The notes: generated from the sequence alone by a model not told the origin. A stretch of 64,000 nt of DNA from Takakia lepidozioides (GCA_030704615.1 CM060733.1:72602001-72666000), one strand, 5' to 3'; counted from the stretch's first letter, positions 20,521-64,000 are shown. A program made the numbers and translations.

Positions 20521-20533
20521 GTAAGTCTGCACC

Positions 20534-21481: not shown

Positions 21482-21640
21482 GAGTGTGTGTGTGTGTGAG
21501 AGAGGAGAGAGAGAGAGAGAGAGAGATGACTCCGGCCAAATTAACCGGCGTAACTAAGAGCCACTTCGCCTCACACCTACTGCCCCCTTTCGGGGGTGGG
21601 CCCTATAAAGAAAGCAGGTGTCCAGGGGACACCGGGTAAC
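21482..21640 (-). mobile_element. 3' end of a non-LTR retroposon with (TC)n/(AC)n tail
   Basis: Minus strand ...GGCGAAGTGGCTCTTAGTTACGCCGG..CCGGAGTCA(TC)n, the same end as 55629-55682. A SINE-type tail also lies at ~21401-21445 on the plus strand. Confidence 0.65.
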
Positions 21641-28050: not shown

Positions 28051-28685
28051 GAGAGGTCCAGAGTAATGAGATCAATCGAAATTCGTTCAATAGGCCAACG
28101 GATGGTTGCCCATCCAAATGATTTTTGTTCGTTTTGAGACTTGGGCAATATGTTCAATGTATCATCTGATAGGTCCCAGAGTAATATGAGATCAATCGAA
28201 ATTCGTTGAATGGGCCAATGAGGCGTTCACCTATCATCCAATATTGTTCATTACGAAAGAAATCATGTCATGCGTGCACGGCTATTGCACCCATTGAACG
28301 GATGTGGTTGAAGCCCACCTTTTGCCCGCAGGTGCTTGAATATGTGTGCGGCACATATACGGAGACACAATAGAAGAAAAAATCATTTGTCTTCCCATCG
28401 ACGCACTCACCCCTCAACCAATTTAGAATTTAATTGAATGTAAATGAATTTCAAGCAAATAATTAGCGTTTGATTGGGGGTTTTTGGTAGGTAACGATTT
28501 ATTTTAAGCTCAATTTTATTCTGTGGCTTCAACCCTCGCACTGCTACATCGTTGCAAAAATTTGGATCAAACAAAAATGGGAATATATATATATCTTCGT
28601 TCACTATTGCAGAACTTTCTATGAAGAGTGCATGAAGTAGAAGACAAATCAAGTTTGGAGTGCAAAAGACGGAACAAACTATGAT
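28051..28685 (-). repeat. Inverted dispersed copy of 39545-40170
   Basis: About 630 bp of clear reverse-complement similarity, including ~120-bp satellite units. Confidence 0.85.
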
Positions 28686-28689
28686 GTTG

Positions 28690-36730: not shown

Positions 36731-37154
36731 ATCCACTCCCATGGGCCCTAGTGATGTAAGCAACAAAAAATGAACCTATGAATGTAGAGTGCAATACCTA
36801 CGAATGTAGAGTATAATGCGATAGCCCAACACTTCTATACCTGTCACCAACCCAAGTGGGTCGATGCACATTGTAGTGTTGAGCTTATACATAATCTGCT
36901 GAAGTGGCTTTGGTGGAAGCTACAATGGCAAAATGTGCACACCCTCCTCTTGGACTACACTCTCGTTCAATGGAATAGAACATCCAAAACAACCTCAAGT
37001 GTTTGCGCCAAAAGAAGTGAGGAGCTTGGTGACCCTACTCCTTTATATATGCTCCAGGAAGGATGAAAGTGAAATGAAAGTGAAATGACAAAATGACCAA
37101 CCAATAGCGCCAACCCGAAAAGGCGGTACAACCATATTTGTTATAATTTTAAAA

Positions 37155-37820
37155 TTAAGCGACCGCAGCTAATACTGCGGTCGCTATTTTTACTTTTTAC
37201 GAAACACAAGCGACCGCCACTATTGCGGTCGCTTTTACTTCCTTTCATTTTGTGAAATATTACGGTCACTTATATTTTGTATATTTAAGCGACCGCCTGT
37301 ATGGCGGTCGCTATTGTTTTTTATTTCGTATTGCGGTCGCTTGATTTGTTTATATATTTAAAATAAATCGACCGCCGATATGGTGGTCTCTTTTCTTCTT
37401 AATATTAAAAAAAAAAACGCAACCGCCAATACGGCGGTCGTTTTTAATCTTTATATTTTGAAGTTTAAGCGACCGCCAGTGTGGCGGTCGCTTTTATTTT
37501 ATATATTTTAAAATCTATGCGACCGCTTGTTTGGCGGTCGCACATATTTTTTATTTTTAAAAAGGCGACCGCCGGTGTGGCGGTTTTATTTTCATATGTC
37601 GCTTGTATTTTTTAAATTTTTAAGATAAAGCGACCGTCATATGGCGGTTGCTTGTTTTTTATGTATTTTTATAATTAAGCGACCGCCATATGGCGGTTGC
37701 TTGTTTTTTATATATTTACAAAATTAAGCGACCGCCAATAAAGCGACCGCCATATTGGCGATCGCTCTTACTTTTTTAATTTTGAAAAATAAAGCGACCG
37801 CCAGAATTGGCGGTCGCTTT
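37155..37820. repeat. AGCGACCGCCA/TGGCGGTCGCT inverted-motif array 2 (upstream of the hAT transposase)
   Basis: More than 20 motif copies in facing pairs with AT spacers; subterminal-repeat-like. Confidence 0.9.
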
Positions 37821-39169
37821 CATTTTATTAATTTTCAAAATGTATTTGCCACCGCCACCGTGTCGACAACGTGGCTGCTTAAGTGATAGTATTTTACCTA
37901 GTACTATTTTTACCAGAATATTCTCGAAACCAGACGTGAGGGAGGTCATGTCAGCGTCAAGTTTGACGTGACCTGATGCTGACTGACAGACGTGACGCTA
38001 ATAACCGGGTCCGCAGCATTGCCCATGCCCGGTTCTCCAGCTGGGACATACAATGCAGGCTAGAGTTATGGAGAAGAATGATTTTGTAATAGGAAATGAA
38101 TAAACTAAGAGGCCAAATGCTTGGAAAGTCCTGGCTCTAGTATGTGGCTTTATGCAGCCATATATCAAAACACGTGGTCGCTGAAGGGCTTTGTATGTCC
38201 TGTATTCTTGTCCTTCTCACCTTTATGGAACATGTGGATGTCCCTCACTGTTGGATCGGAATTCCAAATCTCAAGCCATCTGATTTTCTGCTCTGGCTCC
38301 ACAACCACAGTTGACAAACGATGCAGTTTCTCCCGTGTCATTTCGGGCTTGCTATGTTTTCCCAGTGGAACTTCATTTAGTTTATGAACTCTGGCCCGAA
38401 AGCGGGGTCGGCTTTTCGGAGCTGAATTTGAGTGCGTCAGTGCACTCAGATTCTTGACTCACAATTATTGCTTTGCATTGAGGAGTAGGTAAGCAACACC
38501 TTCTTCTTTTTACTTCCTCTCACCTTATCCCTTGTGCTAAAAAATTGAGTGTGTCGACGTACTCAGTTTCCTGACTCATTTTCTCTGTAGCTTCTTACCT
38601 CCTCTGTGTCCCACATGTTTCTATTCTTTCAGTTCGTCAGAACTAAGCGGAAGGTAAGAAACATAAAAGCTTCTCCTGGAACTGAGTGCGTCGACGCACT
38701 CAGATTTTGGAGTCTTCTTCTTGCCTTCACGTCCCGCTCAGTGAGCCTTCGGATAGACCTTTCCACAGACCTTCAGATAGACCTTGATATAGGACATGTA
38801 CACTGATAAAGTATCAAGGGAGACCATGGTGCATAATAGTAGACCTAATTCTGCCCAACATTCGCATCGTCTTGTGACTTCAAAACGCAGACCAAGTCCA
38901 TGAGCAGACCCAACCCATCTTAGCACTTTGAATATGCTATTATTCTCCTCTCGACAGACCTGTCTGTCGACAGACCTGACAACAGACGTACATAGAGCAT
39001 GTACACTCGTATAGTATCAAGGTGGACTATAGAGCTTGTGAGACGTTCTTCTATAGAGGTACTTCTGCAGGCCATCGGACAGTAAGAACCTTGAATCAGT
39101 TACAGTATACATATATCTGCAATAATCGACATTCAAACGCATGAAAGCCAATAGACACTTAAATTTCAT

Positions 39170-42100
39170 GTCAGACCATCACTTGGTACATTGAACATAC
39201 TGGCCAAGTCTCAAAGCAAACCAAAATCATTTCGATGGGCAACCATCCGTTGAGCCATTGAATGAATTTTGATTGATCTCATATTAGTTCGGGACCCGTG
39301 AGAGGGTGTAACAAACGTACTGGCAAAGTTTAAAAGCAAACAAAAATCATTTGGATGGGCAACCATCCGTTGACCCATTCAATGAATTCTGTTTGATCTG
39401 CTATTACTCTGGGATCTGTTGGGCTGCGTTTCGCGTGCACATGATTTTTTTTTAATTCTGTTTTTGAACCGTATACGTAATGACGGCATAAGCAACGCGC
39501 GTGCCAAACTTGGGAGTGAAAAAAATTCATTTGGACCCAAAACCACAGTTTGTTCCCTCTTTTGCACTCCAAAACTTGATTTGTCTTCTACTTCATGCAT
39601 TTTTCATAGAGAGTTATGCAATAGTGAGCGAAGATAACACCTTTTTTTTTCATTTTTTTTTGTCCAAATTTTTGCAGGGATGTAGCGGTGCAAAGGTTGA
39701 AGCCACAAAACAAAATTGAGCCCAAAATAAAATCGTTACCTAGCAGAAACCCCCAATCAAAGGCAGTGTAAACCTAATTATTTGCTTGAAATTCATTTAA
39801 ATTCAATTAAATTCTAAATTGGTTGAGGGGTGAGCGCGTCGATGGGGGGGGCAAATGATTTTTTCTTCTGTTGTGTCTCCGCACATGTGTCGCACATATT
39901 CAAGCACCTTCGGACAAAATGTGAGCTTCAACCACATCCGTTCAATGGGTGCAATAGTCGTGCACCCATGACATGATTTCTTTTTCGCAATGAACAATAT
40001 TGGATGACAGGTGAACGCCTCATTGGCCCATTCAACGAATTTCGATTGATCTCATATTACTCTGGGACCTCTCAAATGGTACATTGAACACACTGCCCAA
40101 GTCTCAAAGCGAACAAAAACCATTTGGATGGGCAACCATTCGTTGGCCCATTCAACGAATTTCGATTGATCGCATATTATTCTGGGATTTGTCAGATGGT
40201 ACGTTGAACATACTGGGAAAGCCTCAAATGGAACCAAAATCATTTGGATGGGCAACCATCTGTTGAGCCATTGAATGAATTTCGATTGATCTCATATTTG
40301 TCCAGGACCTGATACATGGTATGTTGAATATAGTGACAAAGTTCGAAAGCAAACAAAAATCATTTGGATGCTCAACCATTCGATTACCCAATGAATGAAA
40401 TTCGTTTCATCTCATATTAGACCGGGACCTGTTACATGGTATGTTGAACGTGCTGGCAAAGTTTGAAAGCAAATAGAAATGATTTGGATGGTCAACCATT
40501 TGATCGCCCATTCAATGAATTTCGTTTCATCTCATATTACACTGGGACCTATTACATGGTATGTTGAACATACTGGCAAAGTTTGAAAGCAAACAAAAAT
40601 CATTTGGATGGTCAACCATTCGATCGCCCTTTGAACGATTCGATCGCCCATTGATCAAGCTCTTTCTATGTGTGCCTTGTCTTTTGAAGCTCTGTTTGTA
40701 GTGTCTCATGCTTCGTAATGCGGTGCTTCTCCATGTCCACTTTCTCCAATGTGTTCATGTTCTCTACCCAGAACAGATCCACACATGTGTACAGAAATCC
40801 TTTAAAAAATAAATGACCATGAAAACTTTTGCAAGCCTCATCCCCAGCTTCAAGTTTGGATGGTCAATTGGTTTTTTAAGGATTTCTGCACACATGTGTG
40901 AATCTGTTTCAGGTGGAGAATATCAACACATTGGAAAAATTAGAGTTGGAGAAGCACCTCATTACGAAGCAAGAGACATTACAGAAGACCTCAGCATGTT
41001 GAACATTTGGATGATGAACCATTTCGTTTGTCACTTGAAGCGCTTCTGGAATGATCACATGTTTGTTGGTGGAAGCTAACGCATCCTCGTTTGTCAATCA
41101 TGTCTCCCCCTAGGCCACATTGATCTCGTACCAAGACCTATTACATGGTATGTTCAACATAGTGGCAAAGTTAAAGCAAACAAAAACCATTTGGATGGTC
41201 AACCATTCGAGAGAGAGGTGAATGATTCGATCGCCCATTGATCAAGCTTCTTTCATGGGTGCCCTGCCTTTTGAAGCTCTTTTTGTAGTGCTTCCTGCTT
41301 CGTAATGTGGTGTTTCTCCATGTCCTCTTTCTAGTGATATTCTTGACCTAGAACAGAGTCACAGATGTGTACATAAATACTTCAAAAACCAAGTGACCAT
41401 CAAAACTTGAAGCCTCATCCCCAACTTCAAATTTTGATGGTCATTTGGGTTTTTAAAGATTCCCATACACATGTGTGGATGTATTCCAAATCGAGAACAT
41501 CACCAGATTGGAAAAAGAAGAGCTGGAGAAGCACCTCATTACGAAGCAAGAGACATTACAGAATACCTCAGCATGTTGAACATTTGGATGATGAACCATT
41601 TCGTTCGTCACTTGAAACGCTTCTGGAATGATCACATGTTTGTTGGTGGAAGCTAACGCGTCCTCGTCTGCCAAACATGTCTCCCCCTAAGCCATATTGA
41701 TTTTTGTTCCGGGACCTGTTACATGGTATGTTGAACATAATGGCAAAGTTAAAGCAAACAAAAACCATTTGGATCGTCAACCATTCGAGAGGGAGGTGAA
41801 TGATTCGATCGCCCATTGATCAAGCTTCTGTCACGGGTGCCCTGCCTTTTGAAGCTCTTTTTGTAGTGTCTCCTGCTTCGTAATGCGGTGCTTCTCCATG
41901 TCCTTTTTTTGGTGACATTCTCGATCTAGAAGAGATCCACAGGTGCATAGAAATCCTAAAAAAAACCAAATAACCATCAAAATTTGAAGCCTTATCCCCG
42001 GACCCCAACTTCAAATTTTGATGGTTATTTGATTTTTTAAGGATTTCTATACACGTCTGGATCTCTTCCAGATCGATAATGTCACCAAATTGGAAAAAAA

Positions 42101-44255: not shown

Positions 44256-46714
44256 ACATGCATGATCAAAATTGAGTTATGTCTTCACAAATGAACCATT
44301 GTACGACCGCAAATCTAATATCTATGAGACTATGGTCTACTCCGTCCTATATACGTCTCGAGGCTCAGGCCAATATAATGGTTTGCCCAGGAACCAACGT
44401 ACTACGTGGTCTAATGTGACTCTCTCCTTCTTGTTGTCGTCATACAACCTTCATAGGATTGAATCCCAACAACCTCCCGTAGATTGGTCCTCGAACATAC
44501 TGTCAAGTTATTTTACCATTGGTGTGAAGTTAGCTAGGAAATAGCTACCTTTTATATTATTGACATTTGGGATTGACCCAAGTATCAATCCAGGGGCCAA
44601 TACATGTTTGGGCACCTGGCGTTGTTATCTTCACGGCAGATCGCGGTGGGCTCATCTTTCTCGAGTTGAGCCTCACCTCGTCTAGCTATGGCGCCGTAGT
44701 GTGGATTCCCCATGGCGTGGGGTGCACTTGGCTCGACTTAATATATGAGTGATGTTTTCATGTGCAAGCATGTGAGTTTGAGAGAGCTTGTATGCTTGTA
44801 TCATTCATTTTCCTTATCACTCGAGAAAGATGATCAGCTCGAGTCTGTGAGTGCCAGGTTCGAGTTGTTTTATAGCACTCGTGTTTTCATGAGAAGCGGT
44901 TTAGCCTAGAGTGCAGGGATCCGTGCATGAGCCTATCCAAAGCGGATAGAGTGCAAAGGCGAACAGGTTGCAGGTTTGCAATGGATAGAGAGGCGGGTAG
45001 CCTATGTTGAAGAGCGGCGTTGCATAGCTCAACGCTATGACAACCAAGTTTGGGCTTCTAGTGTGAAGCGGAGAAGATGTTGGCCACAAGTGGACGAACT
45101 GGTGGTCGTCTTCTTCAGCTGCAGGCCAAGTTAAGGAGCTGCAGAAATGTGGGCTGCGCATGGGAAGCTAGCATGTTGCAGGTTGGAGATGATATGATCA
45201 GCTCCAGGTATTTCTGCCCGAAACTAGTTGTTGCGGGTAGATGAGGAGCAGCCGAATGGTGGAGCTGCGAGGGGATGCATCGCAGCCCGTTGGGAGCTTC
45301 AGCTCCAAGCTCATGAAGAGGTATGAGTGAAGAGAGGGGACTGGTCCCTCTTGTGTGCAAATCAGTGCACTTGTGAAGCATGTGCTGAGTTGGAGTTTCA
45401 ATCTGAAACTCAGTAGTGTAAGGGCTCTTGGAGTGGCAAGAGCGGGGCTGGAAGGGCAGCAACGAGGCGCCCTAGAGCCAGGGGATATGCATGAGAAGTG
45501 CAGGTGCACCAAGTTTGTAAAGGTGTGTATTTTCAGATTCGTTTTTGTGAGCTTCATGAAGAAATGGAGCTTGTTGGGCAGCATATAGCTTGCTTGTTGA
45601 GTTGGAGGCACTTCTAGTGAGCTGTGAGAGCTCAGGAGTGCAGGGCGACGGGGCTGATGGCTCCGCAGAAGCCATAGCTCGTCGGCAGCATGTGCTGGAG
45701 CAAGCCCCAGCTCGGGAAGAGCTCGGGAACGCGTGGGAACGCCCGGGAATTCATGGGAACTCGTTGGGAGTTCTAGGGAACACAGGGAATAGTGGCCGTG
45801 ATGGGCCGTTGGGGCGGTATCACGAGATACCACGAGCCCAGGTCGTGATGGTTGACCATGACCGTTGACCGTGACCATTGGAAGTTGTGGTGCGGACACA
45901 ACGGGTGGGCACGGTGACCAGATCGTGGGGATGGCGGGCCGTGAAGGCTTGTGGGCGTGGTACCACGGGGTATCACGAGGCAGCCCGTGGCCAACGAGCG
46001 CCTAGGGCGGGCCATGAGGAGTCGTGGCGGTTGGAGCCACAGAAGGCCGCGAATAGTATATATATTCACTCGTTTCGTGGGACCTTGATGGGGAGGCTGG
46101 GCTCTGAAGAACAACGGTTTTGAGCTAGCTGATCCTGCAGAAAAGTCGGAATTGCCTCCCTGTTGCGTTTTAACAAAGGGGATTACTTCCCTGTAGGTAA
46201 TCTTTTCGGGTTTTCAGCCCAATTCTTAACTATGGGGAAGACCAGCCTGCAGGTAATTCATTTGGACAGAATGTTGTTGGGGCCTATATGTACCTCTATT
46301 TGCTCCATTTTTATGGATCCACCGTTTGTCCATGTCCTCCGTCCACTTATCCCCAGTCAAAGCGTCCATCATTTTCCTCTCCATATTCTGCGGAAAAAAA
46401 ACAAAACCCGTCCCAACCATGCTTGACATAAGGCCTCATCATGTCCCCTACCCCTGAAATAATTAACTACCACTTCTTTCACCCTATCCAAGGCCTCCGG
46501 TCTCGGGTAGTCTAACTTGTTGATCTGGCTATCCCGCTCGTGGGCTTTTTTTCTCTTCCACCGACCCCAGACGACGACCCGCCCCAGAACTTAAGTTCCA
46601 CGCCTGCCGCCATTGGCGAGGTCGCGGGTTCAAACCCGCTGCCCCCGTCCTATTTGTTTTTTGTTTTCTTGATTAGTGGCGCCGAGACGCCGTTTGATGC
46701 TTTAAAAAACAAAA

Positions 46715-47610
46715 AAAGCGACCCACCGTGTATTTCTTAAGAAAAAAAACCACGCAACCCGCGCATGGCGGTTGCTATATTTTATTTATATAAAAAATTA
46801 AAATAATAACAATAATAATAATAAACCGCCATATGGCAGTCGCTGCATTTTTTTAGATATATAAAAGAAGCGACCACCAAACTGCGGTCGCTTTATTTAA
46901 TTTAAAAAAAAACAAATAAGCGACTGTCATTTGGCGGTCGCGTAATATTTTAAATATACAAAAAGCAGCGACCGCCGTTTCATTTCTTAAAAAACCCAAA
47001 TTAGGGAAAAACAGCGACCGCCAGACAGCAATCGCCTAATTTTTATTTTTATTTTAAAAAAAACGAGCGACCTCCCTTGTGGCGGTCGCTTCATTTCTTA
47101 CAAAAACCTAAATCCGGGAAAAAGAGCGACCGCCCGCTTGGCAGTCACTTCATTTCTTAAAACAAATTGGGGAAAAAGAGCGACCGCCACATGGTGGTTG
47201 CTAAATTGTTTAAAAAACAAAAAAGAGCAACCACCAATTTCCTAAAAATACCCAAATTAGGAATAAAGAGCGACTGCCACACGGCGGTCGCTAATGTTTT
47301 TTTTTTTTAAAGAGCGACCGCCCTTCTGGCGGTCGCTTCATTTCATAAAAAATAATTAGGGAATAACAACGACCGCCACACGGCAATCGCTCAATTTTCT
47401 AAAAACTAAAAATGAGCGACCGCTGGATGGCGGTCGCTACATTAAAATTTAAAAAAAAAAACACTGACCGCCACTGGTGAAAAAATCAAACAAATTAGAG
47501 GAGACCGCCAGTGACGCTTCATTTAAAAATATATATAGAATCGACCGCCAATGGCGGTCGTTTAAAAAATAATAAATTGCAAGCGACCGCCAATATGGGC
47601 GGCCGCATTT
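46715..47610. repeat. AGCGACCGCCA/TGGCGGTCGCT inverted-motif array 3
   Basis: Same motif and spacing as arrays 1 and 2. Confidence 0.9.
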
Positions 47611-48479
47611 TTTTTAAAGGAATTACTAAATATTAATAAGTATCCACGTGTGTTTTATACCGTGGCTGCCATGTCATTAGAGAGGGTAGAAGTAAATCGT
47701 AAAAGTCAAATGTAAAAAAAATTACATGGATAAACGTCCAGTGTCGACGTGATGTGACGCACGTCGGACGTGACGGCCGATGTGACATCCAACGTGTTGG
47801 CGCCACATCACGTCAGGAATGATATCTAGGGCTGCGGAGGCAGCTGGTCAATTACAAAATAATAATGACCCCACCAGATGTGTCTTTCAAAGCGTACGTG
47901 CGGAAGTGGAAGACAACTGCCTGGAGCAATTGCTGCTTCAGGGAGTTTGCCAAAGAAGGTATTATATCACGTACCAAAGACTTCGAGCAGCAGCACGACA
48001 CAGAGCCGGCGATGAAGAGAATTTTATACAGGTCCTCCTTTTATACTTTCATCCGCTGACGTTTTCTTCACTTTTTCTATACTTCATATTGGTCTTGGTT
48101 TTGGCCCTTGGTATGGGGGATGGACCCCTCCAGATCTGAGTGCGTTGACGCACTCAGTTTTGAAGGGCCAAAACCCTCTCCCACTTTCCCACGAAACTGA
48201 GGAAGGAAGTGGAGGACGGGGTTGTCTTGTACTCCTCTTGTACTTTTCCTAGTATGGAGGATGGACCCCTCCAGATCTGAGTGTGTTGACGCACTCAGTT
48301 TGGGAGGGCCACAAACCCTCTCCCACTTTCCCACGAAAGTCAGGAAGGAAGTGGAGAACGGGGTTGTCTTCTGGTTTTCCAGGTCTGTGGGATGGACACC
48401 TCCAGATCTGAGTGCGCCGTTGACGCACTCAGTTTTGGAGGACGGGGGGAGGTGATGGGACCCCCATGATGTCGTATTT

Positions 48480-48722
48480 ACGTAGCGACGGGTAGGGCGA
48501 GCAGGCATAGGTATCGCCACAATGCGACCCCCAAGCAGGTGGAGGTACCTAGCGACGGGTATGGCGGGGGGCGGTGGTATCGCCACGATGTGTCCTCCGG
48601 GGGGGCACATTTACTCAGCGACGGGTTTGGCGGCGGGCATGGGTATCGCCACTATGCGCCCCCCAGGGGGTCGGAGTTACGTAGCGACGGGTATGGCGGG
48701 GGGAGGGGGTATCGCCACTATG
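48480..48722. repeat. ~65-bp tandem repeats with TAGCGACGGG/TATCGCCAC, CACTA-subterminal-like
   Basis: Four units; the GCGAC core is shared with 27560-27998. No CACTA TIR seen next to it. Confidence 0.6.
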
Positions 48723-50149
48723 GAGCCTGCAATTACAATGGGTTCTGTGAGGCCCTTGGCCAATCTTTTCAAGTCATGTACACAAACCAAATAAAGACAA
48801 CAAAAACAAAAAGAATGTAGTAGGCAATACAACAAAATGGAGAGAGAGATACTGGCCTCATGATGCTCCGAGGCAATGGTATCCCTGGGCCTGAGTGCGG
48901 GCAACTCAGGCACCTCGAGTTCAGGTGCCAAAAGTTGTCCCATTGATGGCAATGGAACCCCCATTGCCGCCAAGGATGCCATGAGTTGTGCTTGCTCTTT
49001 AGGAGAGGCTTGACCCCAACTGCCACTAGCTAGAGTCACACCAGCGAGCTGGCCAAATGCGAGGCCCTTCCTGGCCGAGGAAACCAATGGAGGTATCATG
49101 GACAAGAGAGGGAGAGGCGCCTTGGGTACCATGAGATGCATCATGCCATGAAGAACTCCCCAATCTTTCAACAGGAGCATCATTTGGGCCAAGCGGCCTA
49201 GCTACCTCCCCACGTATGGGACCCCTCTCCACCCTCTCTCTCTCTTATGCATTGATCAGCAAATCCCGTTGACGTGTCATAACCCTCCTAACCTCGGTGG
49301 TTGGAGAAGCACCGGGAGCAATATCCAATTGGCCCATCCTAGGACCATCTTGAAAAATCCTTATATTACCCGTATACAATGCTTCTAACAAAGGAGAGAG
49401 GGTAGCGCTAGATACTGCAGGCCCAATGGAGGACTCATCAATAGTACCAGTAGTATCCGACATAGGAGCCACTTCAACTACAACACCTTGGCCCAAGAGG
49501 GGGGCATCATCATCAACACGGTGCTCGGGGGGGGGGGGCACTGGTACTCTCGGGCTCATGAAATGAAGGAGCAAGCACAGGAGGAGGGGAAGGTCGGGGC
49601 GTCAAACCAGATTTCTTTCGTGTACTTGAACGATACGGGTTTGCTTCTGGTTTTTTTCCTTTTCTTTGTAGCTGGGGTCTTCTCCGAATCCTTGGCCATG
49701 TCTGAAATGAACTACAACAAATGAATTCAAAGAAAATATCCTAAAAAGCATAATGAAGAATGTAGAGTATTACATAGATTTTTATAGAGCAAAAAAGAAT
49801 TATACACTAGAAAAGACACTACAATATATCAACATCAAATAAACAAATAATTAATTAAAAAACTACACCAAATACAGACCATGGGACATACAAGTAGAAA
49901 TACAAAAAGTAGGAAAACACAATAATGCAGCCGTTAGCTTCGTAGTCTTCTCTCACGAGCCCTGAATCACAAAACACAGAGGCAGAGGCAGGGAGTACCA
50001 GACCCGAGCAAGAGGACGGTAGATGCCAGCGACCAGAGAACCAGCCAACGTCCGTGGGGCAAGGGGGCGAGACAGGGAGGTCAGTCACTACATGCACCAC
50101 AGCGCGCCAGCTCCCCATTCCTGCGAATGTGAGGTAGGTTGTGAGAGAC

Positions 50150-51548
50150 ACAGATGGAGAGGGTGCCTGCATCACCCAAAATCAGAAGAAAAAAAAGCCC
50201 ATATGGGTTGGGGTGCCTGCATGCACCAGCGCGGCCAGCCCCCCCGTTGCTACAAATTGCCTGATAGAGATGGTGAGGGAGAGAGAGAGGGTGTCTGCAT
50301 CACCCAATTTTTTTAAAAAAAAACCCATGTGGGCTGGGGTGCGTGCGCGCACCAGCGCAGCCAGCCCCCCTGTTGTGGCAAATTGCTGCACAGAGATGGT
50401 GAGGGAGAGAGAGAGGGTGCCTGCATCACCCAAAATAAAATAAAATAAAAACCCATGTGGGCTGGGGTGCCTGCGCGCACCAGCGCGGCCAGCCCCCCGT
50501 TGCTGCGAATTGCTGCACAGAGATGGTGAGGGAGAGAGAGAGGGTGCCTGCATCACCGAAAATAAATAAATTAAAAAAAAAAACCCAGGTGGGTTGGGGT
50601 GCCTGCGCGCACCAGTTCGGCCAGCTTCCCCCCCCCCCCTTGCTGCGAATTGCTTGACAGAGGTGGTGAGGGAGAGAGAGAGGGTATCTGCATCATCCAA
50701 AATCAAAAAACAAAAAAGGTCATGTGGGCTGGGGTGGCTGCAAATTGCCCCTACGTTGCTACGAATTGCTGCACAGAGATAGTGAGGGAGAGAGAGAGGG
50801 TGCTTGCATCATCCAAAATCAAAATAAAAAAAAAAACCCATGTGGGCTGGGGTGGCTGTGCCAGCCCCCCTATTGCTGCAAATTGCTGCACAGAGGTGGT
50901 GAGGGAGAAAGAGAGGGTGCCTGCATCACCCAAACTCAAAAAAAACAAAAATCCCATGTGGGCTGGGGTGGTTGCGCCAGGCAGGTTTCACACACCAGAC
51001 AGCAGTTGAAGTCCGAGCAGCAATAGGGAAGGTGGCTCCACAGAGAAGCCAATCAAAGAACAGTTACCTCATTTTGTAAGTCTCTGTCTCTCTCTGTCTT
51101 TCTAGCTGGGTCAATGGCCACAAGGCACAAACAATGTCCTGTTGCTCCCAATTGTTGCACAGAGGTGGTGAGGGGGAGAGAGAGGGTGCCTGCATCACCC
51201 AAAATAACAAATAAAAAAACCCATGTGGGCTGGGGTAGCTGCGCCAGCCCCCCTGTTGCTGCCAATTGTTGCACAGAGGTGGTGAGGGAGAGAGAGAGGG
51301 TGCTTGCATCACCCAAAATCAAAAAATAAAAACTCGTGTGGGCTGGGGTGGCTGCGCCAGCCCCCTTGTTGCTGCCAATTGCTGCATAGAGGTGGTGAGG
51401 GAGAGAGAGAGGGTGCCTGCATCACCCAAAAAAAAAAAAAAAAAAACCGTGTGTGCTAGGGTGGCTGCGAATTGCCCCCCCCCCGTTGCTACGAATTGCT
51501 TGACATAGGTGGTGAGGGAGAGAGAGAGGGTGCTTGCATCACCCAAAA

Positions 51549-51609
<61 letters not shown>

Positions 51610-52350
51610 GGCTGGGGTGGCTGCGCTAGCCCCCCTGTTGCTGCGAATTGCAGCGCAAAGGTGGTGAGGGAGAGAGAGAGAGGGTGCCTGCATCACCCAA
51701 AATAAAATAAAATAAAAAAACCCATGTGGGCTGGGGTGGCTGCGCCAACCCCCCTGTTGTTGTGAATTGCTGCACAGAGGTGGTGAGGGAGAGAGAGAGG
51801 GTGTCTGCATCACCCAAAATCCAAAAAAAAAACCTATGTGGGCTGGGGTGCCTGCTCGGCCAGCCCCCCCCCCCCCCCGTTGCTGCAAATTGCTTAACAG
51901 AGAGCTAGGGTGATAGAGAGAGGGTGCCTGCCATCACCCCAATTTATTAAAAAAAATAAAAAAAATCCAAGTGGGCTGGTGGGGCTGCGCGCATCAATGT
52001 GGCCAACCCCCCCCCCCCCCCCCCCCCCTTTTGCTGCAAATTGCTTGACAGAGAGCATGCGTGATAGAGAGGGTGTCTGCCATCACTCAAATTTGAAAAA
52101 AAGAAAAGCTCATGTGGGCTGGTGTGGCTGCGCACACCGATGCGGCCAGCCCCCCATTGCTGCGAATTGCTTGACAAAGAGCATGTGTGATAGAGAGGGT
52201 GCCTGCCATCACCCAAATTTGAAAAAAAAAAAAAAAAAACCCAAGTGGGCTGGTGTGGCTGCGCGCACCAATGCGGCCAGCTCCCCGTTGCTGCGAATTG
52301 CCTGACAGAAAGGTAGTGTGAGAGAATGAGAGGGTGTCATCACCCAAATT
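50150..52350. repeat. ~120-bp minisatellite array with an embedded (TA)n at 51554-51606
   Basis: Unit GAGGGAGAGAGAGAGGGTGCCTGCATCACCCAAAA..CCCATGTGGGCTGGGGTG..GTTGCTGCGAATTGC repeated more than 15 times. Confidence 0.92.
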
Positions 52351-52884
52351 CAAAAACCTAACCAAGCTCGGGTGGGGTGGGTGTAGGGTGCTTACCAGGG
52401 ACGGACAGCCGGGTCGAGCCAAGCTCCGGTGACCTACCCTGCAGCACATACACACATAGGGTAGTGGCCCCGGTGAGTTAACAGACCGACAGAGGTGGGG
52501 GAGCTGGAATTGGCGAGCTCGCCTTGCGAGGAAAAGGAAGACAGAGGGGAGGGTTTGAAGGTGCAAGGAAAGCAAGGTAAACGAAAGAGAAGGGATTCCT
52601 AGCTCACCTCCGGAAGACGCACGGCCGAGGGCGAGCAGCTCAACGTTGGAGCTTGGGAGACTCCACAGCCACGGCAAAAAGCAAGTGCACGAAACGCGCC
52701 TTCCTCTGAGCTCTCCCACGACAAGGTGACCTCCGCAACTCTCACCCTCTTGCTGAAATTTCTACCTTGCAAGCGGAGTGAAGAGGAGAGGGAGAGGGAG
52801 CTGGGCCGTGAGAGAGAGAAGGAGGTCGCTTGACGATTTTGAATTTTTTTTAATTAACGACGGTAATCAAATAAATCAAAAGAA

Positions 52885-53545
52885 TCCCGTCGTTGTGTAG
52901 TTGCGACCCCCTGGAGGTCGCTTCCGGGGACTTAGAAGTTTTTAGTGTGCACCCATTTCCCGTCGCTTTCTATAATCGACCCCCTAGAGGTCGCTTATGG
53001 GGACTTGGTAGTTTTAGAGCCGGATGCTAGCTAGTGTGGGCACCCATTTCCCGTCGCTTTCTATATGCGACCCCCTGGAGGTAGCTTCCGGGGACTTGGT
53101 AGTTTTTAGAGCCGGATGCTAGCTAGTGTGGGCACCCATTTCCCGTCGCTTTCTATATGCGACCCCCTGGAGGTAGCTTCCGGGGACTTGGTAGTTTTTA
53201 GAGCCGGATGCTAGCTAGTGTGGGCACCCATTTCCCGTCGCTTTCTATATGCGACCCCCTGGAGGTAGTTTCCGGGGACTTGGTAGTTTTTAGAGCCGGA
53301 TGCTAGCTAGTGTGGGCACCCATTTCCCGTCGCTTTCTATATGCGACCCCCTGGAGGTCGCTTTCGGGGACTTGGTGGTTTTAGTACTGCCGGATGTTGT
53401 GGGCACCCATTTCCCTTCGCTTTCTAGATACGACCCCCTGGAGGTCGATTCATGGACTTAGAAGTTTTGGTGCCGGATGCTGCGGGCACCCATTTCCCGT
53501 TGCACGGTATCTGCAACCCCCAGGTGGTCGCTTCCTGGGGGTTGG
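52885..53545. repeat. 92-bp tandem repeat
   Basis: CACCCATTTCCC starts at 52950, 53041, 53133, 53225, 53317, 53404 and 53487; the central units are almost identical. Confidence 0.95.
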
Positions 53546-55068
53546 AGCTTTTTTGAAAGCATGATGTCCCGTTTCATATAATTCATATATCAGTTGGATG
53601 TGCAATTTCAATAGTGAGGTTTTTGGATTTTTTTTTTATAGGTGATGGTATGCTCACGGCTCGGCCAATCATGGAGGATGATTATCAAAATGTAGCTCCA
53701 CCCGACGAGAACACCTCCAACAATGATGTCCGTATGCTTGATATACTTCCACCTCTTTCAAGACGTTGAAGACGTAGGGATGAGCGGTTGGCGGACGTAC
53801 CTGGAGATGTTCACGTGATTCATGCACAAGGCCTCGAGCATCCCGTTCCACATCCCAGCTTGCCACGTCGAGGTCCTGGCCTCTTAGTCCAGAGCCACGA
53901 GGCCCTGATCGAGCCACTTTGGACAAACCCCCTCGGGTGGAGTGTTGGTGCGGTGTTGGGCACGAGTGGCACCTGGAGGTGTTCCCGTGTTGTGGCAGGA
54001 TCATATTGTGGATGAACACTATCAGACATGGGGGATTGCCGATGCGGCAAGGGTGAGCCTTCTATAACCTATTGTTGTAACATTATTTGTGCTAGTATAT
54101 AAGGACGTACGTTTGTTGTAAGTACTCGTTTATTTAAAAATGACTTGTAATTGATACTGTAATAGAAGTTACTGTGGTTAAATATATGAGTAAACAACAA
54201 ACTAATTGTATGAATTATATATTACATGCAGCCACGAGTCGTTGCCCTCCAAAAGTGTAAAAACAGTACATCACAAATACGTGATGAGTTGGAGGTGGAC
54301 CATCCATTGCTGGATGTGACTTTGTTTTTCCCTCAGGTTGACACAGATAGGGTCCGTGAGACGAGGGGCTTACCCTACGTCCTTTGATTATTTGGTCGCC
54401 AAGCGCGCAGCCGGCCACCGCTTGCACCGGCACCTCCTCATGATGTCAATATTCCACGTCCATCACCAATACGCTCTAGTTGTACTAGTCCAGCTCCACC
54501 TCCTCCACCTTCTGATCCTCATCCATCTGTATCTCCTCCTCGTCCAGTTTGCACTAGTACACCGGCCCATGCAGAGTCACCTACATCACCTCCACTTTGC
54601 ATCACTCCACCGATCCATGAGTCACCTCTACCACCTCCACTTTGCACTAGTACTGCACCGACCCATGCGTCACCTCTATCACATCCAGTTTGCACTAGTA
54701 CAACAGCCCACGAATCACATCTACTTTCGAGTCCACCCCGTGGGCAATCACCTCCCAGCTGCTCACCTGATCATTCACATACCACTCCACCTCCTAGTTC
54801 ACATCACCAATCATCCCAACATATCCGGACAGCTGCTCCTTTCCAATCTCAGGCCCTCGTAGCTGTGTCACGTGCACGTCCCACCCGGACCCCTAGGAGG
54901 TGTAGGCCACCACCGGTACTTGAGGCACGACGGCCCGATGATCCTAGGGTTACTGACAAGGAGTATAGGACGATGTTGCAGACACCATTCAGGCCTAGCC
55001 TTTGGCGTGCACTAGTGCCTCCGGTCCCCATTCCTCAAGGCCAACCATTTCAGTTTGGGGTCGGCGAT

Positions 55069-55526
55069 ATTGTGTGAGAGCCGCCACCAACCCTTCCATG
55101 GGTCGTGGACTATTTGCAATGGAGGATATTGTGGTTCCTCAAGGGAGAGGGCAGATAGTGGACTTATTTCCCTACTTTGGCCCATACTACATGATTTTCC
55201 ACTGGGATCAGATGCGACGGGCAGCCCTTTGGGTGAGACCTTATGGTCTTTGTGTCAATGACCTCGATGTCTTCAATCGGGTGTTGGACCCTGGAACAAG
55301 GGTCATATGTGACAGAGATCCCGATGTGTTCGGGAATGTTGCAAGGTTCATCAATAGTTCAATTGGTAAACCTAAAATGACCAATGTATTGTGGGATGAG
55401 CGACATGACGGGGATGTTAGGCTAACACAATCGATATCAAATTTTGTTATGACATATGCCTGTAGTACGATTCCCGCCGGTTCAGAGTTGTTCGCCTCTT
55501 ATGAGTTCTCTGATAAGATGGGATGA
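55069..55526 (+). pseudogene. SET-domain (lysine methyltransferase-like) coding region at the end of a frameshifted Pro/Ser-rich ORF (~54338-55526)
   Basis: YCVRAATNPSMGRGLFAMEDI..FPYFG, GNVARFINSS, YACSTIPAGSELFASY. A frameshift near 55065 separates it from upstream ORF 54865-55077. Confidence 0.85.
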
Positions 55527-55628
55527 GAAAGGAAATCGGGAGTGGAGGGAGTTTGCCAAACGTTACAAACGTCACTCCCGCGGCCGCCGAGGAAACTCGT
55601 TCTAGGGGATGGTGATTAGTCATGTACA

Positions 55629-55682
55629 GAGAGAGAGAGAAGACTCCGGCCGAGGCCGGCGTAACTAAGAGCCACTTCGCCT
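55629..55682 (-). mobile_element. 54-bp 5'-truncated retroposon tail
   Basis: Flanked by a perfect 13-bp TSD TTAGTCATGTACA; (TC)n tail; same sequence family as 21482-21640. Confidence 0.85.
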
Positions 55683-55863
55683 TTAGTCATGTACACATAT
55701 CGTGGCCCCTATTGTGGCAGCGGTAGGGATTGGTGATTAGGGTTTAGGTTTTAGGCTGAATGTGCCATCGTACATATATTTTTTGGATGCAAATGGAGCA
55801 ATTCCCAACCATTGTATATTAAATGAATTGTGAATGTATTTATAGATCCAAGTACAAGAGCAA

Positions 55864-58567
55864 ATGAGTTCAGCGAACCCTCCAAAGGGCACGCAGGCCG
55901 AGGTGGTCAACAGTACTAGTATTGGCCGCGGAGAACAAGGCCCAGGTGACCATATTGCCCAAGACGGTGACGAGGTGGACAATGAACACAATATGGACAC
56001 TGACGATGTGAGAGCCATGGAGGATTTGTTAATGAACCACTTGGGGGAGGGACAACAAATTGGGGAGGATATGGCTCGCCCGGCCACATTGGATGAAGAT
56101 GCCGACCCAAATCCAATGGAAGCCGAGGCAAACACACCCTTGTATAAAAGAGCAAGAGTGAGTCAACTTTCCACTATACTGTTGTTGCTTAATTTGCAAT
56201 CCCGGTTCGGCATAAGCAACGTTGGCATGTCTGCAATCATGCGCACAATTGCGGACCACATCCTCGCCCCCCATTTGGAGCATAAAATGCCATGTTCAAG
56301 AAAGGAGGCAAGACAGGTTCTAGACACAGTGGGGATGGGCTACAAAATCATCCATGCATGTCCTTGTGATCGCACCTTGTACTATGAAGAGCATGCGCGT
56401 GCTACCACGTGTCCCAAGTGCAAAAAATCTAGATACCGAGATGATGTTCAAGGAAAGAAATCCCACGAAGGTACATTTCTCTTATATTCTCTTTCCTGCC
56501 ATTTATATTTATATACATATATACATGTGTCCACCAACTAATATATCATTTTAGGGTGTAGGGTTTAAGAGGTTGTATCATTCCAATATTATTAGGGTAT
56601 GCATATAGGTTATATGAATCCTTCAACTAATGTAGACTTTACAAAATATCTACATACAAACCTTTGCAAATATATACCCCTCTCTTACGTACAATATGTG
56701 GATCAAAATGACAGAAAGTAAATATTGATATATTTGTTGTGTTTGTGGGGGAGGTTAGAAAATGCATTATTTTCCAATCATCCCGCGCTTGAAAGCACAA
56801 TTCCGCAGTCCATCATTTGCCCAACTCATGAGTGGCATGCGGAGCATCGTTGAGCCCTCCCAGAAAGATGTGCGGCCCTCACGATTCGCCGGCATGGAAA
56901 CACACCGAGGAACAATGGCCTTTTCTGAAGGACGATCCAAGACTTGTTCGGATCAGTTTCTCCGCGGATGGTGTAAACCCATTCTCAGTCCAGTCAAATA
57001 GCCATTCAACATGGCGTGTGACTTTGGTTAACTACAACATCCTTCCTTATCTTGATATCAAGAAGGGTCATATCATGTTGGCTGCCATTGTGCCAGGTGA
57101 ATAACACAACTCTTTTTTTGTTGCTTTAGGATGTACGTGGTAGTACAATGTCGAATATATATGAAACTAAGAATATCATTTGTTCTGTTTGAATTTGAAA
57201 TAATCTTATATGTATTGCAAATAATTTGTGTTGTAGGGAAAGAACAAGTTGCGAATATGGATGTGTATCTGCGTCCATTGGTTGACGAACTCAAGATATT
57301 ATGGAATGGAGTTCCAGCTTATGATGCATCGGCACCCACTGGCCAACGTTCTTTTCTCTTGCGAGGGCTTTTGCTATGGACAATGCATGACTATCCAAGT
57401 ACATTTTAATTTGATATTACCTATTATATATATATATATATATATTCATATTCTACCGTATATCATGTGTTTGTATGTGCTCGTCATGATTTTTCTTTAG
57501 CAATTCATGTTTACGCTCGGTTCATTGAAATTATATGAGGCGATGAATGTTAAATCCCAACTAAATTCATGGTTTTGTGCAGTGCTTTAAGTTTGTTCGG
57601 GACTAAGCACAAAGGGGTACGCATCATGTTCATGTTGTGGGCCAGATAACCTTGATGCAAAGCATTCGAAGAACGTCGCAAAAATGATCTATGCCAACTA
57701 CCGGAAATTGTACAAGTCCAAAATGCATTGGACCATACATATTTCATTGAATGTCATGACATATTCATATGAAATTGCACCAAGTTCAGGGTTTATGACA
57801 AATTATATGGAAATTTCATGATGCGCATGATCTGAAAATCCGGCACCTCCTTGATCCCATGCATATTGAGAAGAATGTGTGCTCGTCACTTATTTGTGTA
57901 CTGAAAAACTTAACCAGGGGGAAGAAGAAACGCGGCGATGATTCCCTTGGTGTGAGGCGAGAGCTCCAAGCCCAAAACCGTATGCCACGACTATGGCCTG
58001 AAGCTGATGGTGTGGACGTGAACAATGCTCCCAAGTGGAAGTATAGGGCGCCAACTTGGACTTGGACAAAGGAGGAATACAAGCAAGTGTGGACCACAAT
58101 ACCAGCTATCCGGACCCCGACCGGGTATGGCGCATCTCTATGCAACAAACTTGAGGATGCCACCACTATCCATGGTTTGAAGTCTCATGACTACCCACAA
58201 TATTTGGCAAGACATCCTTCCCATTGCAATACAAGGGACACTCCATGAGGGCATTTGAAAAGCCATCTATCGACTTGGTGATTTATTCTGTTGGCTTTGC
58301 ACAAAAGAGATGGACGAGGCGGATTTTCCACGAATGAAGGAGGAGGCGGCCACGGTCTTGTTTATGTTGGAGATGCATCTTCCCCCTAATTTCTTTGACA
58401 TCCAAGTGCATTTGGTAGTGCACTTGGTGGAAGAGGCGGAGATTGCCGGGCCGGTCTATGCTCGGTGGATGTACTTTCTAGAGTGTTACATGAAGGAGGT
58501 CAAGGCACACGTGCGGCAAAAGGCACATCCCAAGGGTAGCATGGCAGAGAGGTTGAGTTATTCATGA
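55864..58567 (+). pseudogene. CACTA/En-Spm transposase (TnpD/Tnp2; Transposase_21 + DUF4218), spliced, frameshifted, 3'-truncated
   Basis: IHACPCD..CPKCKKSRY; YFPIIPRLK; DSPAWKH; ADGVNPF; DVYLRPLVDELKILW; WTMHDYP; DPMHIEKNV; LKSHDY; FFDIQVHLVVHL..GPVYARWMY..GSMAE. Confidence 0.95.
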
Positions 58568-59159
58568 GCAGAGACCGAAAATTCCATGAGCAGATGCCAC
58601 CGAACATAGCATTATCCGCCATTCGGAGGCATACTCTTCGCCGAACATAACTCCGAACCGCCGAGCCTGTGCCGAACTTTTAATCTCGGAATTACTGAAG
58701 CAGGGTCCACTGGCAAAGCAGAGCTTGTGCCGAACCTCCTTTTTGTATCCCGAAATTCTTGGAGAAAGGTCATGTCGGTTAGCCGTGCCACGTTCGACGT
58801 CGAACAGCGCCGGGCTGTAGTGCAAGAGGAGGAAAGTTTGAGCCCTAAGAAAAAACGAGAGGATGAGGGCATCGTCCACAATGGTAGCAAGGTTGGAGAT
58901 AATCTGTAGGTGTAATGTAACCCATCAGATCTCCAAAATATTCCCAACCACTCCCATTGTGAGCCCCAACCACATTCCTCGAGTATGAAACCTTGATGCC
59001 AGTTAGGACATATAAAGAAACAGGACCTCCAGCTGCAAACGATATGGGATAAAGATGTGGAAGGTCCAATTTGAAAACAGTCCAAAAAGGCCCAGAATGT
59101 GACAAACGACTAATATGCGCTTCATATTCATGCGAAATAGATTCTTAAAGGAAATGAGA

Positions 59160-60330
59160 GATGATGAATCGGCCAATCACGCCTCGGGAAATGGCCGCGA
59201 TACAGATTGAGTGCGTGGCCGTCCCAGGAGGAACCGATAGTTTCCAGCCGCTTCCCGACAACATAATACTGCACCGCAGCTCCCGGAGTGAATTGCCAGC
59301 GGTAGTATTCCAGGACGCACGCCGAAATGGAAATCTGAAGGAATTTTTGAAATTTCAAGTTGAATTGTTGAAATGGATGAAATGTAATAATGGATGAAAA
59401 CCCGAGGGAAATGGAAATGTGTAGGTACTTATGAAACATCAACTGTGGATTCATTTTGAGGGCAAAAGGCATGTTCGGTGCCGATGTCCAATGTGGAATG
59501 CATTTGATGACCGGTATTGGCATTGGGTATTCTCTCTCTGCAAATTCTTTCTATCGGAAGCAGGGGTTCTAATTCTCCTCATTCAGTCCATACATGTGAG
59601 ATGTCGTCGGGAGCTGGCAATCTATTTGAAAGCTTCAAGGATGAGGATCATTATCAAGACCTGGAATGGTGTGACCACCTTGTACTTGATGAAAGGAGAT
59701 TGTCCAAGTCAAATGACAATTATCTGACCGCATGTGAGTCTTAATCTTTCTTTCGTGTTTTGTGATATCTCATTCATGTCGTCTCTAACTCATGTCTTGT
59801 TTCCCACAGACCCGTCTTTTTTAGGCCATTTGTCTCGTCAGGGTACACCCTCCATCCACTAGTCATGCCTCTGTGAAGAAGTTCAAAAATTCATGGTGTC
59901 TTGGAGAGGGGCCATGTCAAATGGAGTGCCTTAGAGAGGGGCCCAGGAGAAGAGCCCTGCCTTTATTCAGACTCTCATTGAGACTTGTAGCTGGTGTTGG
60001 GCAGCCGCATCTGCATTGATTTGTCTATGGGCACACGTTCTTCTCCATTGTCATCTTCTATTTTTCCACCATCCCGTTTTTTTTTCAACATATTTTTTCT
60101 TATTTTCTGGATCTGTCTCCTGCACTAGGCGCTTCCTTCCATGCTTGCAAGGCTGCCGGCAAACACCTGTTTGGTATGAAAGGGGATGCGGACATTTCGT
60201 GCTTGCAAATTTGCAAGGGTTGCATCCTTTGCCATACTCAAGGAGCCTACTGTGCTTGTTGATCTGAACGAGCCAGACGACAAAGACCTCGATGACGATT
60301 TTCCTATGAGTAAGTTCATTTCGTCAATGT
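59160..60330 (+). pseudogene. Spliced beta-class DNA amino-methyltransferase-like gene, decayed (copy 2)
   Basis: WNAFDDRYWHWVFSLCKFFLSEAGVLILL; GVP*RGAQEKSPAFIQTLIETCS; IDLSMGT|xASFHACKAAGKHLFGMKGDADI with an intron at 60037-60128 in the same position as copy 1. Confidence 0.6.
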
Positions 60331-60819
60331 ATGTAATTTTAGTCCATGGAATGTTGCTGCTTGCTCTCCCCTGCTGTTTTATTTACTGTTTCTAATGCAA
60401 ATGTTGCATTTCCTGTGGCAGGAAAATATCCGGTCTCACAGGGCACAAGGTCTTTGATTCGTGGAATGGATTTTGTTGTAGCCCTCCGCATATTTACCTC
60501 CTCCCCGACTACGCAGAGGCCATTGCTCTAGAGCAAGCTGCCGTGCTCTCTCCTCCCGGCCCCAGCTATGGGTCCGACTTCACGCCACACATTTGGGCAC
60601 CTCATGGCAAGGTTCTTCATAGATGATAGTGCCGCAGTTTCCGGGGATAGTTGTAGTTCTACCACTGCAGATAATATATCTCCTTGAACATGAACATTGT
60701 TCGTAAATGAGGGGACACAGTTCCTGCTTTTCAAATCCTCCTCCTAAGTTGTTATAAAGGTTTATTTTTCCTCAAACCATTTTGACTGATGTGTTCTAGC
60801 TGTATGAAACATCACATTT

Positions 60820-62199: not shown

Positions 62200-64000
62200 T
62201 CTCTCTCCTTTGTGACAATGGGTCCAACGTTAAGCTCCCAGTTGTCCTCCGTAACTGAAACCTTAAGTCCAGCAGACTTAGAGGTAGGAGACGTGTCCTG
62301 TGGTTGATATGTTGCAACCTCTTGAGCAGTGACCACTGCCTGCTCTGTCAGTGACAATGCCTTATCCTGCCCTATCATCCCTTCCTTGAGGACTTCCTTA
62401 GTCTGAGAAAAATCCCCAATCTCATCCATCACCTTAGCCGACTTGGTTGCCAACTCCCTCTGAACCTCGAGCACCTCCCACGTGTGCCATGGATGCCTGC
62501 ACCTTGTGGTCTTCACCTCTTTACCCCCACTCGCTGCCTACGTCGTCTCGGTATGCAGGGAGATTGTCAAGGGAAGTTGAGTAACTAAAGTTGACCGCAG
62601 TCGGCGCTGCTCAGCCATACTCAAGCTAATGATTCAGGTCAAGCAATTGAGATCCATCACTTGCCCCAACACTTGATGACGTGATGCCTCGGAAAGAGAT
62701 GGCACCACCGTGGTACCAGTGGGAAAACCCATTGCCCTCTCGCGCTCGTCAGCATTGGACTCCACTAACTGCTGCAACTGGACACCCCACAAGAGGCCTG
62801 GTCCACTATCCCGGAAAGCATGAGATCCTGGAAAGCTGAGCACTGTAGGCAATGCTGCTTGTAAGTGACCCACCTTATTGACCATTGCCAAAGGTAAGCG
62901 GTCATCGTGTCTCACACTCTGAGACTGCCTCCCTATGTCCAAAATGCTATCCACCGTGAGGTTTGGTGGCCGCTGCACCCCATCAAATGCACGCTTGAGC
63001 AGTGCGGGTGGCATCAAGTTGGTCCACCATAGTCGTGGACGATGGGCCAGTGACCCCACTGCAGTTGCATCCAACAATACTGCTGACCCGAGCCACAACC
63101 AAACCTGATGCACACTGGCCATCACCTTGGCCTGAGAATCACCCATCAATGGTACAATCTCCAAGTTGTATGCTAGAGAGTCCGTCTGCTGAAGCTGTAA
63201 ATAGCGCAGGATCCTTAACATCTCCCAAAACAAGCACGACCTTGAGTCTTGCAATCCATTGTCATGTCTGGCCGATGAATGTCATTGGCAGGGCCAATCT
63301 GCCACTACCAAATGAATGGAGCCAACCCGCTCCAAATCCTACGCCCCTAGCAAAGAAATGTCTGCTGGCAATGTCTGCTGGTATCCACGAACTGCAGACA
63401 CCGGCAACAACTCAGGGTACTGCTGCACTAGTTGAGCAACATGGCGCAGTGAGACGCGGTGTGCAGTCTCATCCCTCTCCACATACAAGTAACGTTGTAC
63501 TCGTACACCTGCCTGTAGCACAGCAGCCAAACCAGTGCTGATCCCGCCAAACAAGTCCAGAAGGGAGATGCCTTCATCCGGGTATTGCCACACAATAGGT
63601 GTGGTGTCCAATGGCGACAGCTGAGGTGGTCCTGGTGCAATCACCGCACTCTCCTCCTCTCCTGATGGTACAAAAGCCTCCACCCAGGCTTTTGCTGCAA
63701 ATCCTTGCTTGTGCCCCACATTGGAGTGTGAGCAATCATGGCAGGCAACTCCGCCATACCATGCATGTCATCATGCTCTGCTAGAGGTAGCACATCCTCT
63801 GTGAGTGCATTGCCCTCCAATAACTATCCAGGCCAACTCACTATGGCTGTGAAGGCTGTACTATCGGCATCTTGCCCCGTTGGGCAGCAGCAATACCCCC
63901 AATGAATGTCACATGGAGTTGCATACGACGACCATCCCCTGATTGCCATCCAGGCCTATAGGAGGCTGACTCCTCCCATAAATCCAGGGTGAAGCCCATG
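62200..64000 (-). pseudogene. C5-cytosine DNA methyltransferase (DNMT3-like) embedded in a probable Gypsy-like polyprotein; decayed and running off the window
   Basis: Motif I LLDLFGGI, II YVERD, IV VVADWPCQ, VI LEIVP (ENV degenerate), VIII AHRPRLWWTNL, IX ERERAMGFPTG, X LGQVMD. Intronless; in-frame stops at ~63340, ~63283 and ~62635. Coding-like sequence continues on both sides. Confidence 0.88.

Follow-up and report, generated by a model that had tools for sequence, protein, structure and literature searches.

To our knowledge, VANDAL/VANC is the only transposon anti-silencing system that has been worked out, and VANC is neither a SET nor an MTase-fold protein. Reports on Arabidopsis VANDAL elements describe a transposon-encoded protein that acts on motif arrays in the element's own non-coding DNA (PMC5735166, PMC10398659). 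In red algae, Plavaka elements (EnSpm/CACTA) carry PAG2, in which PF01555 is combined with PF00856, and PAG3, in which a ParB-like domain is combined with a 2OG oxygenase, together with inverted-repeat arrays, and PAG genes move among TE families including Mutator (Petroll et al., 10.1101/2025.02.11.637652). SET cargo is also described for HarbingerS and oomycete MuDR elements (cited in PMC12730594), and in N4CMT the change of SPPY to APPA abolishes activity (PMC8885841). A preliminary description of the locus studied here knew of no CACTA family with both a SET and a DNA amino-methyltransferase (MTase) domain, a view that is not supported in the light of Plavaka PAG2 (10.1101/2025.02.11.637652). 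Chromatin-enzyme cargo of transposons is thus already known from red algae; its wiring in land plants is new. Neither a land-plant Tnp2-SET family nor a ParB-like/MTase-like family is described in the literature searched, Repbase and subscription journals lying outside that search.

The locus belongs to a window of 64 kb, the whole stretch of DNA that was analysed, which is transposon-rich land-plant DNA with retrotransposon pieces. A SET region, an En-Spm transposase and a spliced N4C/N6A-MTase-like gene had been proposed there in this order; all three genes are real and all are broken, and no gene at the locus is functional now. The first two comprise the following features.

53641-55526, plus strand: SET gene, spliced and broken, with an unknown N-terminal part, a proline-rich linker and a C-terminal SET domain
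53641-54052, plus strand: inferred N-terminal exon of the SET gene
54053-54231, plus strand: inferred intron of the SET gene
55101-55502, plus strand: SET domain (PF00856), by Pfam profile match, motifs and ESM Atlas neighbours
55616-55695: 54-bp fragment of a retroposon-like repeat of very high copy number, flanked by 13-bp direct repeats
55864-58550, plus strand: Tnp2-type CACTA/En-Spm transposase, broken, with PF02992 twice and DUF4218
58545-58570: breakpoint, marked by the end of transposase homology, a drop in depth and a spanning contig of about single-copy depth

The SET domain claimed at 55069-55526 is confirmed, since the ORF at 55002-55526 matches PF00856 at 26.6 bits (E 8e-6, Pfam), above the gathering threshold of 22.4 bits; its extent needed correction, as a longer gene, spliced and beginning at about 53641, has this domain at its C-terminal end. 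ESM Atlas neighbours of this ORF are SET clusters, among which Streptophyta are commonest. The window copy contains the motifs GRGLFA, RFINSS and ELFASY, that is, GRG and the terminal Tyr are retained and the His of RFINH is replaced, and it has no post-SET cysteines. The gene is interrupted by stops at about 53767 and 54385 and by frameshifts near 53915, 55053 and 55518. In same-species contigs, indels at 55053 and 55518 distinguish other copies; position 55053 is where the linker and SET frames meet, and the other copies differ there by one base and keep the frame intact. A homologue search with the SET ORF found no relatives, a first metagenome scan gave no confirmed match, and there were no SET matches in viral contigs, phages or PDB sequences.

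The transposase had been placed at 55864-58567 and called truncated, and both statements hold. PF02992 is matched twice (E 4e-21 and 7e-14) and DUF4218 once (E 1e-24) by Pfam, and homology stops at about 58550, the gene being cut off just past DUF4218. The Plavaka model has no Pfam match in this transposase, which matches Transposase_21 and DUF4218 instead. Its inferred introns are 56471-56758, 57097-57236 and 57399-57582; a probable RNA run contains a contig of a related transposase that is spliced from 56464 to 56757. The gene has several frameshifts and stops. A homologue search with exon 1 found nothing, and no TnpA-like second gene was recognised at the locus; DUF8039 occurs in the relative locus L006. 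The absence of terminal inverted repeats, seen from the beginning, agrees with our search for CACTA...TAGTG termini with a 3-bp TSD, which gave no convincing pair in 44-64 kb, the 3' end being deleted here. We tried TAGTG at 58818 and 60627 with CACTA at 49805, 49817 and 54017, and they form no TIR pair with a TSD.

That SET and transposase belong together is borne out by contigs of a same-species DNA run placed on 54750-60740, among which single-copy contigs have depths of about 64-85. Between 54750 and 58549, a stretch that takes in the proline-rich linker, the SET domain and the transposase, no 200-bp bin has a depth below 1100, and the SET 3' flank is connected to transposase exon 1 in a contig that derives from another copy. 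For these two reasons SET and Tnp2 are one multi-copy block in same-species DNA; no single contig of that run covers both the SET ORF and the transposase. Over 58550-59349 depth is 300-516, a three- to fourfold fall which is measured against equally fast-evolving upstream parts, contig depth not being copy number. The 54-bp insert between SET and Tnp2 is absent in another copy (joint 55619-55689), and the bin at this repeat reaches a depth of 79,800. The same retroposon-like, very high-copy repeat, with a GA-repeat end, also occurs at about 21500-21620.

Past the breakpoint, the MTase-like gene at 59.2-60.6 kb is a 3' half only and its whole 5' half is missing. Its pieces, and an orphan exon further upstream, are these.

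47818-48032, plus strand: orphan middle exon of the ParB-like/MTase-like family (tblastn with L001, 37% over 71 aa, E 1e-9)
59158-59358, plus strand: tentative linker exon, its end resembling the exon before motif IV in L001 and L004
59425-59733, plus strand: MTase-like exon, region of motifs IV-VIII, with the motif IV strand deleted near 59490 and a frameshift
59810-60036, plus strand: MTase-like exon with motif X (RGAxEK) and motif I (D-L-S-M-G-T), stops and a frameshift
60129-60309 and 60422-60626, plus strand: last inferred MTase-like exons, motif II region and conserved tail

The preliminary description had this gene at about 59160-60330. It is indeed spliced, as described, and relatives match it; it runs on to about 60626, and what is left is a 3' half without motif IV. 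We rejected 59160-59310 as the start of motif IV, of which a remnant lies near 59480-59495. In same-species contigs the other copies have loose letters before 59494, and one of them has 59158-59358 and the exon that follows it in colinear order (joints 59056-59154 and 59199-59372). The exon 59810-60036 is followed, after motif I, by a phase-1 intron that both window copies and five relative loci have in common. Pfam gave no match on the window copy's own MTase-like pieces. In a search of 1.8 billion proteins the exon 59425-59724 retrieves relatives, and the pieces 59488-59721, 59887-59991 and 60104-60196 match relatives in order, with E down to 2e-12. Motif II keeps its Glu in relatives and has Lys in the window copy. 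Probable RNA runs gave two contigs with a match of about 93% to the MTase exon, which does not show transcription of the window copy. The exon at 47818-48032 has the strand and relative position that the missing upstream part of this gene would have, and is a candidate for it.

The window contains four further pieces of the MTase family (15.7, 18.4-20.5, 38.0-38.5 and 47.8-48.0 kb), and these lie among the following features.

6299-10501, minus strand: DUF630/DUF632 host gene, the only clear host gene in the window
15684-15890: last-exon fragment of the MTase family
18418-20521, plus strand: second, diverged MTase-like 3' half, with motif IV kept (DIPNG) and intron positions shared
34657-38458, minus strand: hAT transposase (DUF659, hAT dimerisation), beside the palindrome array at 37.2-37.8 kb and a middle exon of the MTase family
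48680-49574, minus strand: two ORF pieces of one gene, pointing away from the SET gene

The ORF pieces at 48680-49574 have no Pfam match and no relatives were found for them, and tRNA and Rfam searches gave no match. ORFs at 62634-63767 (minus strand) resemble, by eye only, a C5-cytosine methyltransferase in a retrotransposon (motif LDLFGG). A 120-bp tandem repeat family lies at 40024-40638 and 28058-28689, inverted, with 88% identity over 650 bp.

Further searches, made exon by exon with the joined spliced model left out, gave 31 relative loci of the MTase-like gene (199 kb, many of them short). They come from plant-derived contigs, the JGI samples among them being, we assume, peat-moss metagenomes, and we infer that the host of the transposon cargo is a seed-free plant. 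The relatives share a layout of a DGNHR N-terminal domain, two middle exons, a conserved exon, a low-complexity linker and the MTase-like domain, and exon order is conserved across several organisms. The N-terminal domain may be called ParB-like by its motifs only; ParB_N has no Pfam or PDB profile match for the N-terminal half of relatives, and PDB profile searches with alignments of the MTase and ParB parts gave either no match or spurious ones. The family was not found in viral and prokaryotic contigs, and no direct donor emerged. Transposase neighbours vary: the gene is head-to-head with Tnp2 in L006, upstream of Tnp2 in L030 and beside a hAT transposase in L005, where the clade of the window's hAT (44% identity) adjoins a full gene, and no transposase is in view at L007-L012 and L031. 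The MTase-like gene is hence a cargo of DNA transposons, standing beside both CACTA and hAT, and its proposed link to CACTA is upheld by L006 and L030 and qualified by the hAT neighbour and the differing order. In L006 (1-10500), Tnp2 is on the minus strand and faces away from a gene with NIF (weak) and DUF8039, after which the MTase-like exons follow; no ParB-like exon was found in that locus. None of the 31 loci contains a SET relative, a weak test because many loci are short.

Structure modelling, suggested earlier as a check, gave a folded model for the relative P0015 (pLDDT 76), whose match to CcrM has Foldseek E 1e-6 and Z 12.5 (rmsd 4.6, 173 aligned). M.MboIIA (Z 11.6), bdelloid N4CMT (Z 10.9) and M.PvuII (Z 10.5) follow, and the top 8 structure-match rows are all beta-class DNA MTases. 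P0015 is thereby predicted to have the permuted Rossmann fold of beta-class amino-MTases, in the order IV-VIII, TRD, X-I-II. Its top ESM Atlas neighbours are phage fusions of ParB_N and N6_N4_Mtase (TM 0.64-0.65), and weak PF01555 and PHROG methylase matches for the family agree with the MTase fold. The model of the short piece P0006 was discarded as too poor (pLDDT 54, best Z 3.9). Motif IV reads [DN]-[ILVM]-P-[EDKN] in 23 of 23 reads, many from close relatives, and the aromatic residue of DPPY is missing in every one of them; no TSPPY or SPPY motif was found in the family. The SAM-binding motif I, canonically D-x-F-x-G-x-G and given above for the window copy, is DWQCGVG and DLTASTG in relatives. 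A tree of the motif IV exon had no resolution and no window row, and it was not relied on. The N4C/N6A-MTase-like label therefore stands as to the fold of the relative's model and falls short as to the catalytic motif [DNS]PP[YFW], which is missing, and the idea that the element writes DNA marks is not borne out, the catalytic motif being degenerate across the family. As for selection on the cargo, dN/dS of the MTase-like exons lies for the most part at 0.09-0.45; two pairs are near 0.7, and others are saturated at synonymous sites. These ratios indicate that the MTase-like domain is under purifying selection, and since it lacks the DPPY aromatic all the same, the family is probably a pseudo-enzyme or has altered chemistry.

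Repeats of GCGAC type had been noted upstream and are present at 48478-48722 and 52945-53481, within a larger set of arrays.

46710-47610: AT-rich array of spaced palindromes GCGACC-N10-12-GGTCGC (5 exact matches in the window, 0 expected)
48478-48722: 66/132-bp tandem repeats, inverted to the 92-bp array at 74-78%
50157-52350: 113-131-bp tandem arrays
52871-53567: 92-bp tandem array (5.9 units at 52945-53481) with six GCGACC-N7-GGTCGC palindromes at 0-1 mismatch

Similar AT-rich arrays lie at 31.5-32.0 and 37.2-37.8 kb. The three AT-rich arrays hold 22 palindromes with a shared half-site and spacers of 10-14 bases (0-2 in shuffles), and two of the three touch MTase-family exons. The inverted pair of 92-bp and 66/132-bp arrays lies upstream of the transposase. 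In L031 (1678-2619), an 84-bp tandem array with the palindrome TCCGCG-N4-CGCGGA is found just upstream of a full ParB-like/MTase-like gene. Such arrays fit putative element-specific binding sites. The 92-bp array upstream of SET shares the GCGACC half-site with the arrays beside MTase-family exons; of the hints at a single system made up of the SET element and the MTase gene, this is the strongest. A second palindrome, TGAGTGCGTCGACGCACTCA-like, forms small clusters at 32378, 38430-38700 and 48137-48430, near arrays and MTase-family exons.

We favour, at slightly better than even chances, a composite reading, in which two kinds of DNA-transposon cargo, now decayed, were brought together at the locus by nesting and deletion. 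It is likelier than one three-part element because there is no TIR or TSD, depth falls past the break and the missing upstream exon lies at 47.8 kb; the half-site shared between the SET-upstream array and the MTase-family arrays weakens it. In this reading a Tnp2-type CACTA family carries a SET gene of its own, which stands immediately before the transposase and follows a tandem array with palindromes, and a separate spliced accessory gene, ParB-like plus MTase fold, moves between DNA-transposon superfamilies. The CACTA element most likely inserted into or next to such an accessory gene, and a deletion ending at about 58550 would then have removed the CACTA 3' end and put Tnp2 beside the gene's 3' half. 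In intact copies, the palindrome arrays of the element would probably be bound by its ParB-like part. The MTase fold would grip or flip DNA bases or perform altered chemistry rather than standard 6mA/4mC writing, and the SET protein would methylate lysines, either of transposon proteins or of chromatin close by. By analogy with VANDAL/VANC, where it has been shown, and with red-algal Plavaka, where it is proposed, the net effect would be an element-specific escape from silencing.

The strongest competitor, which we consider possible and clearly less probable, is close to the single autonomous family first proposed: one large CACTA family would carry SET, Tnp2 and then the ParB-like/MTase-like gene, the locus would be an internally deleted copy, and the intact element would be a land-plant counterpart of the Plavaka PAG cassette. 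The three genes share a strand, a single deletion would account for both truncations, the GCGACC half-site is common to the arrays, L006 and L030 place the MTase-like gene in a CACTA context, and depth in the bin 58550-58749 is still some 4-5 times that of single-copy contigs. Against it stand the fall in depth at 58550, the differing order in L006 and L030, the lack of SET in every relative locus, and the lack of a TIR or TSD; moreover, four other MTase-family fragments in 64 kb make chance contact likely. One autonomous family with its parts in the order seen here is not supported. An autonomous CACTA of seed-free land plants with a complete self-targeting chromatin kit (palindrome reader, D-x-P-E MTase fold and SET) is doubtful; if it existed, its D-x-P-E active site would be new and would make or read an unusual DNA modification.

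It is more improbable still that the genes are passive cargo, host or foreign fragments captured in Pack-CACTA style with no role in the element. All three are broken here, the catalytic motif is degenerate and RFINH has no His, as such fragments would be; but the MTase-like exons are under purifying selection among copies, their order is conserved and an intron shared in several organisms, the association recurs with three transposase contexts, and the SET frame at 55053 is kept in other copies. Finally, that the MTase-like gene is a domesticated epigenetic enzyme like Marchantia DN4MT1, beside which transposons merely landed, is very improbable in spite of its conserved introns and of the transposase-free view at L007-L012 and L031, given the large number of decayed copies in each genome (four further pieces in the window, five loci in one assembly), the transposases and arrays as neighbours, and the lack of TSPPY/SPPY.

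The locus itself is a ruined copy and a poor experimental starting point, and its value lies in two testable land-plant candidates, a ParB-like/MTase-fold gene with palindrome arrays and a SET cargo in Tnp2-type CACTA; the conserved non-canonical motif IV also poses a clear biochemical question. Among described systems, bdelloid N4CMT (PMC8885841) and Marchantia DN4MT1 (10.1101/2021.02.12.428880) have in common with the family a beta-class amino-MTase fold, prokaryotic origin and introns, but they are host genes with an intact SPPY needed for activity, whereas the window family is transposon-borne with D/N-x-P-E. The phage ParB_N and N6_N4_Mtase fusions resemble it in structure, at the TM values given above, and in weak sequence matches to phage DNA methylases, and differ in having no introns. 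HarbingerS and MuDR elements are likewise DNA transposons with a SET accessory gene, of other superfamilies and hosts, with no amino-MTase-like gene reported for them (PMC12730594). VANDAL elements are Mutator-type, and function is shown there and inferred here. The closest likeness is to Plavaka, compared here by domain descriptions: an EnSpm-superfamily transposon with PF01555-type methylase, SET and ParB-like domains and arrays. There methylase and SET are fused, whereas here SET is a separate proline-rich gene on the other side of Tnp2; there ParB is joined to a 2OG oxygenase, whereas in our relatives a ParB-like part and the MTase fold make up one gene; further differences are the Tnp2-type transposase, the land-plant host and the degenerate motif IV found here. 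This suggests that red algae and land plants may have built similar kits from the same domains with different wiring.
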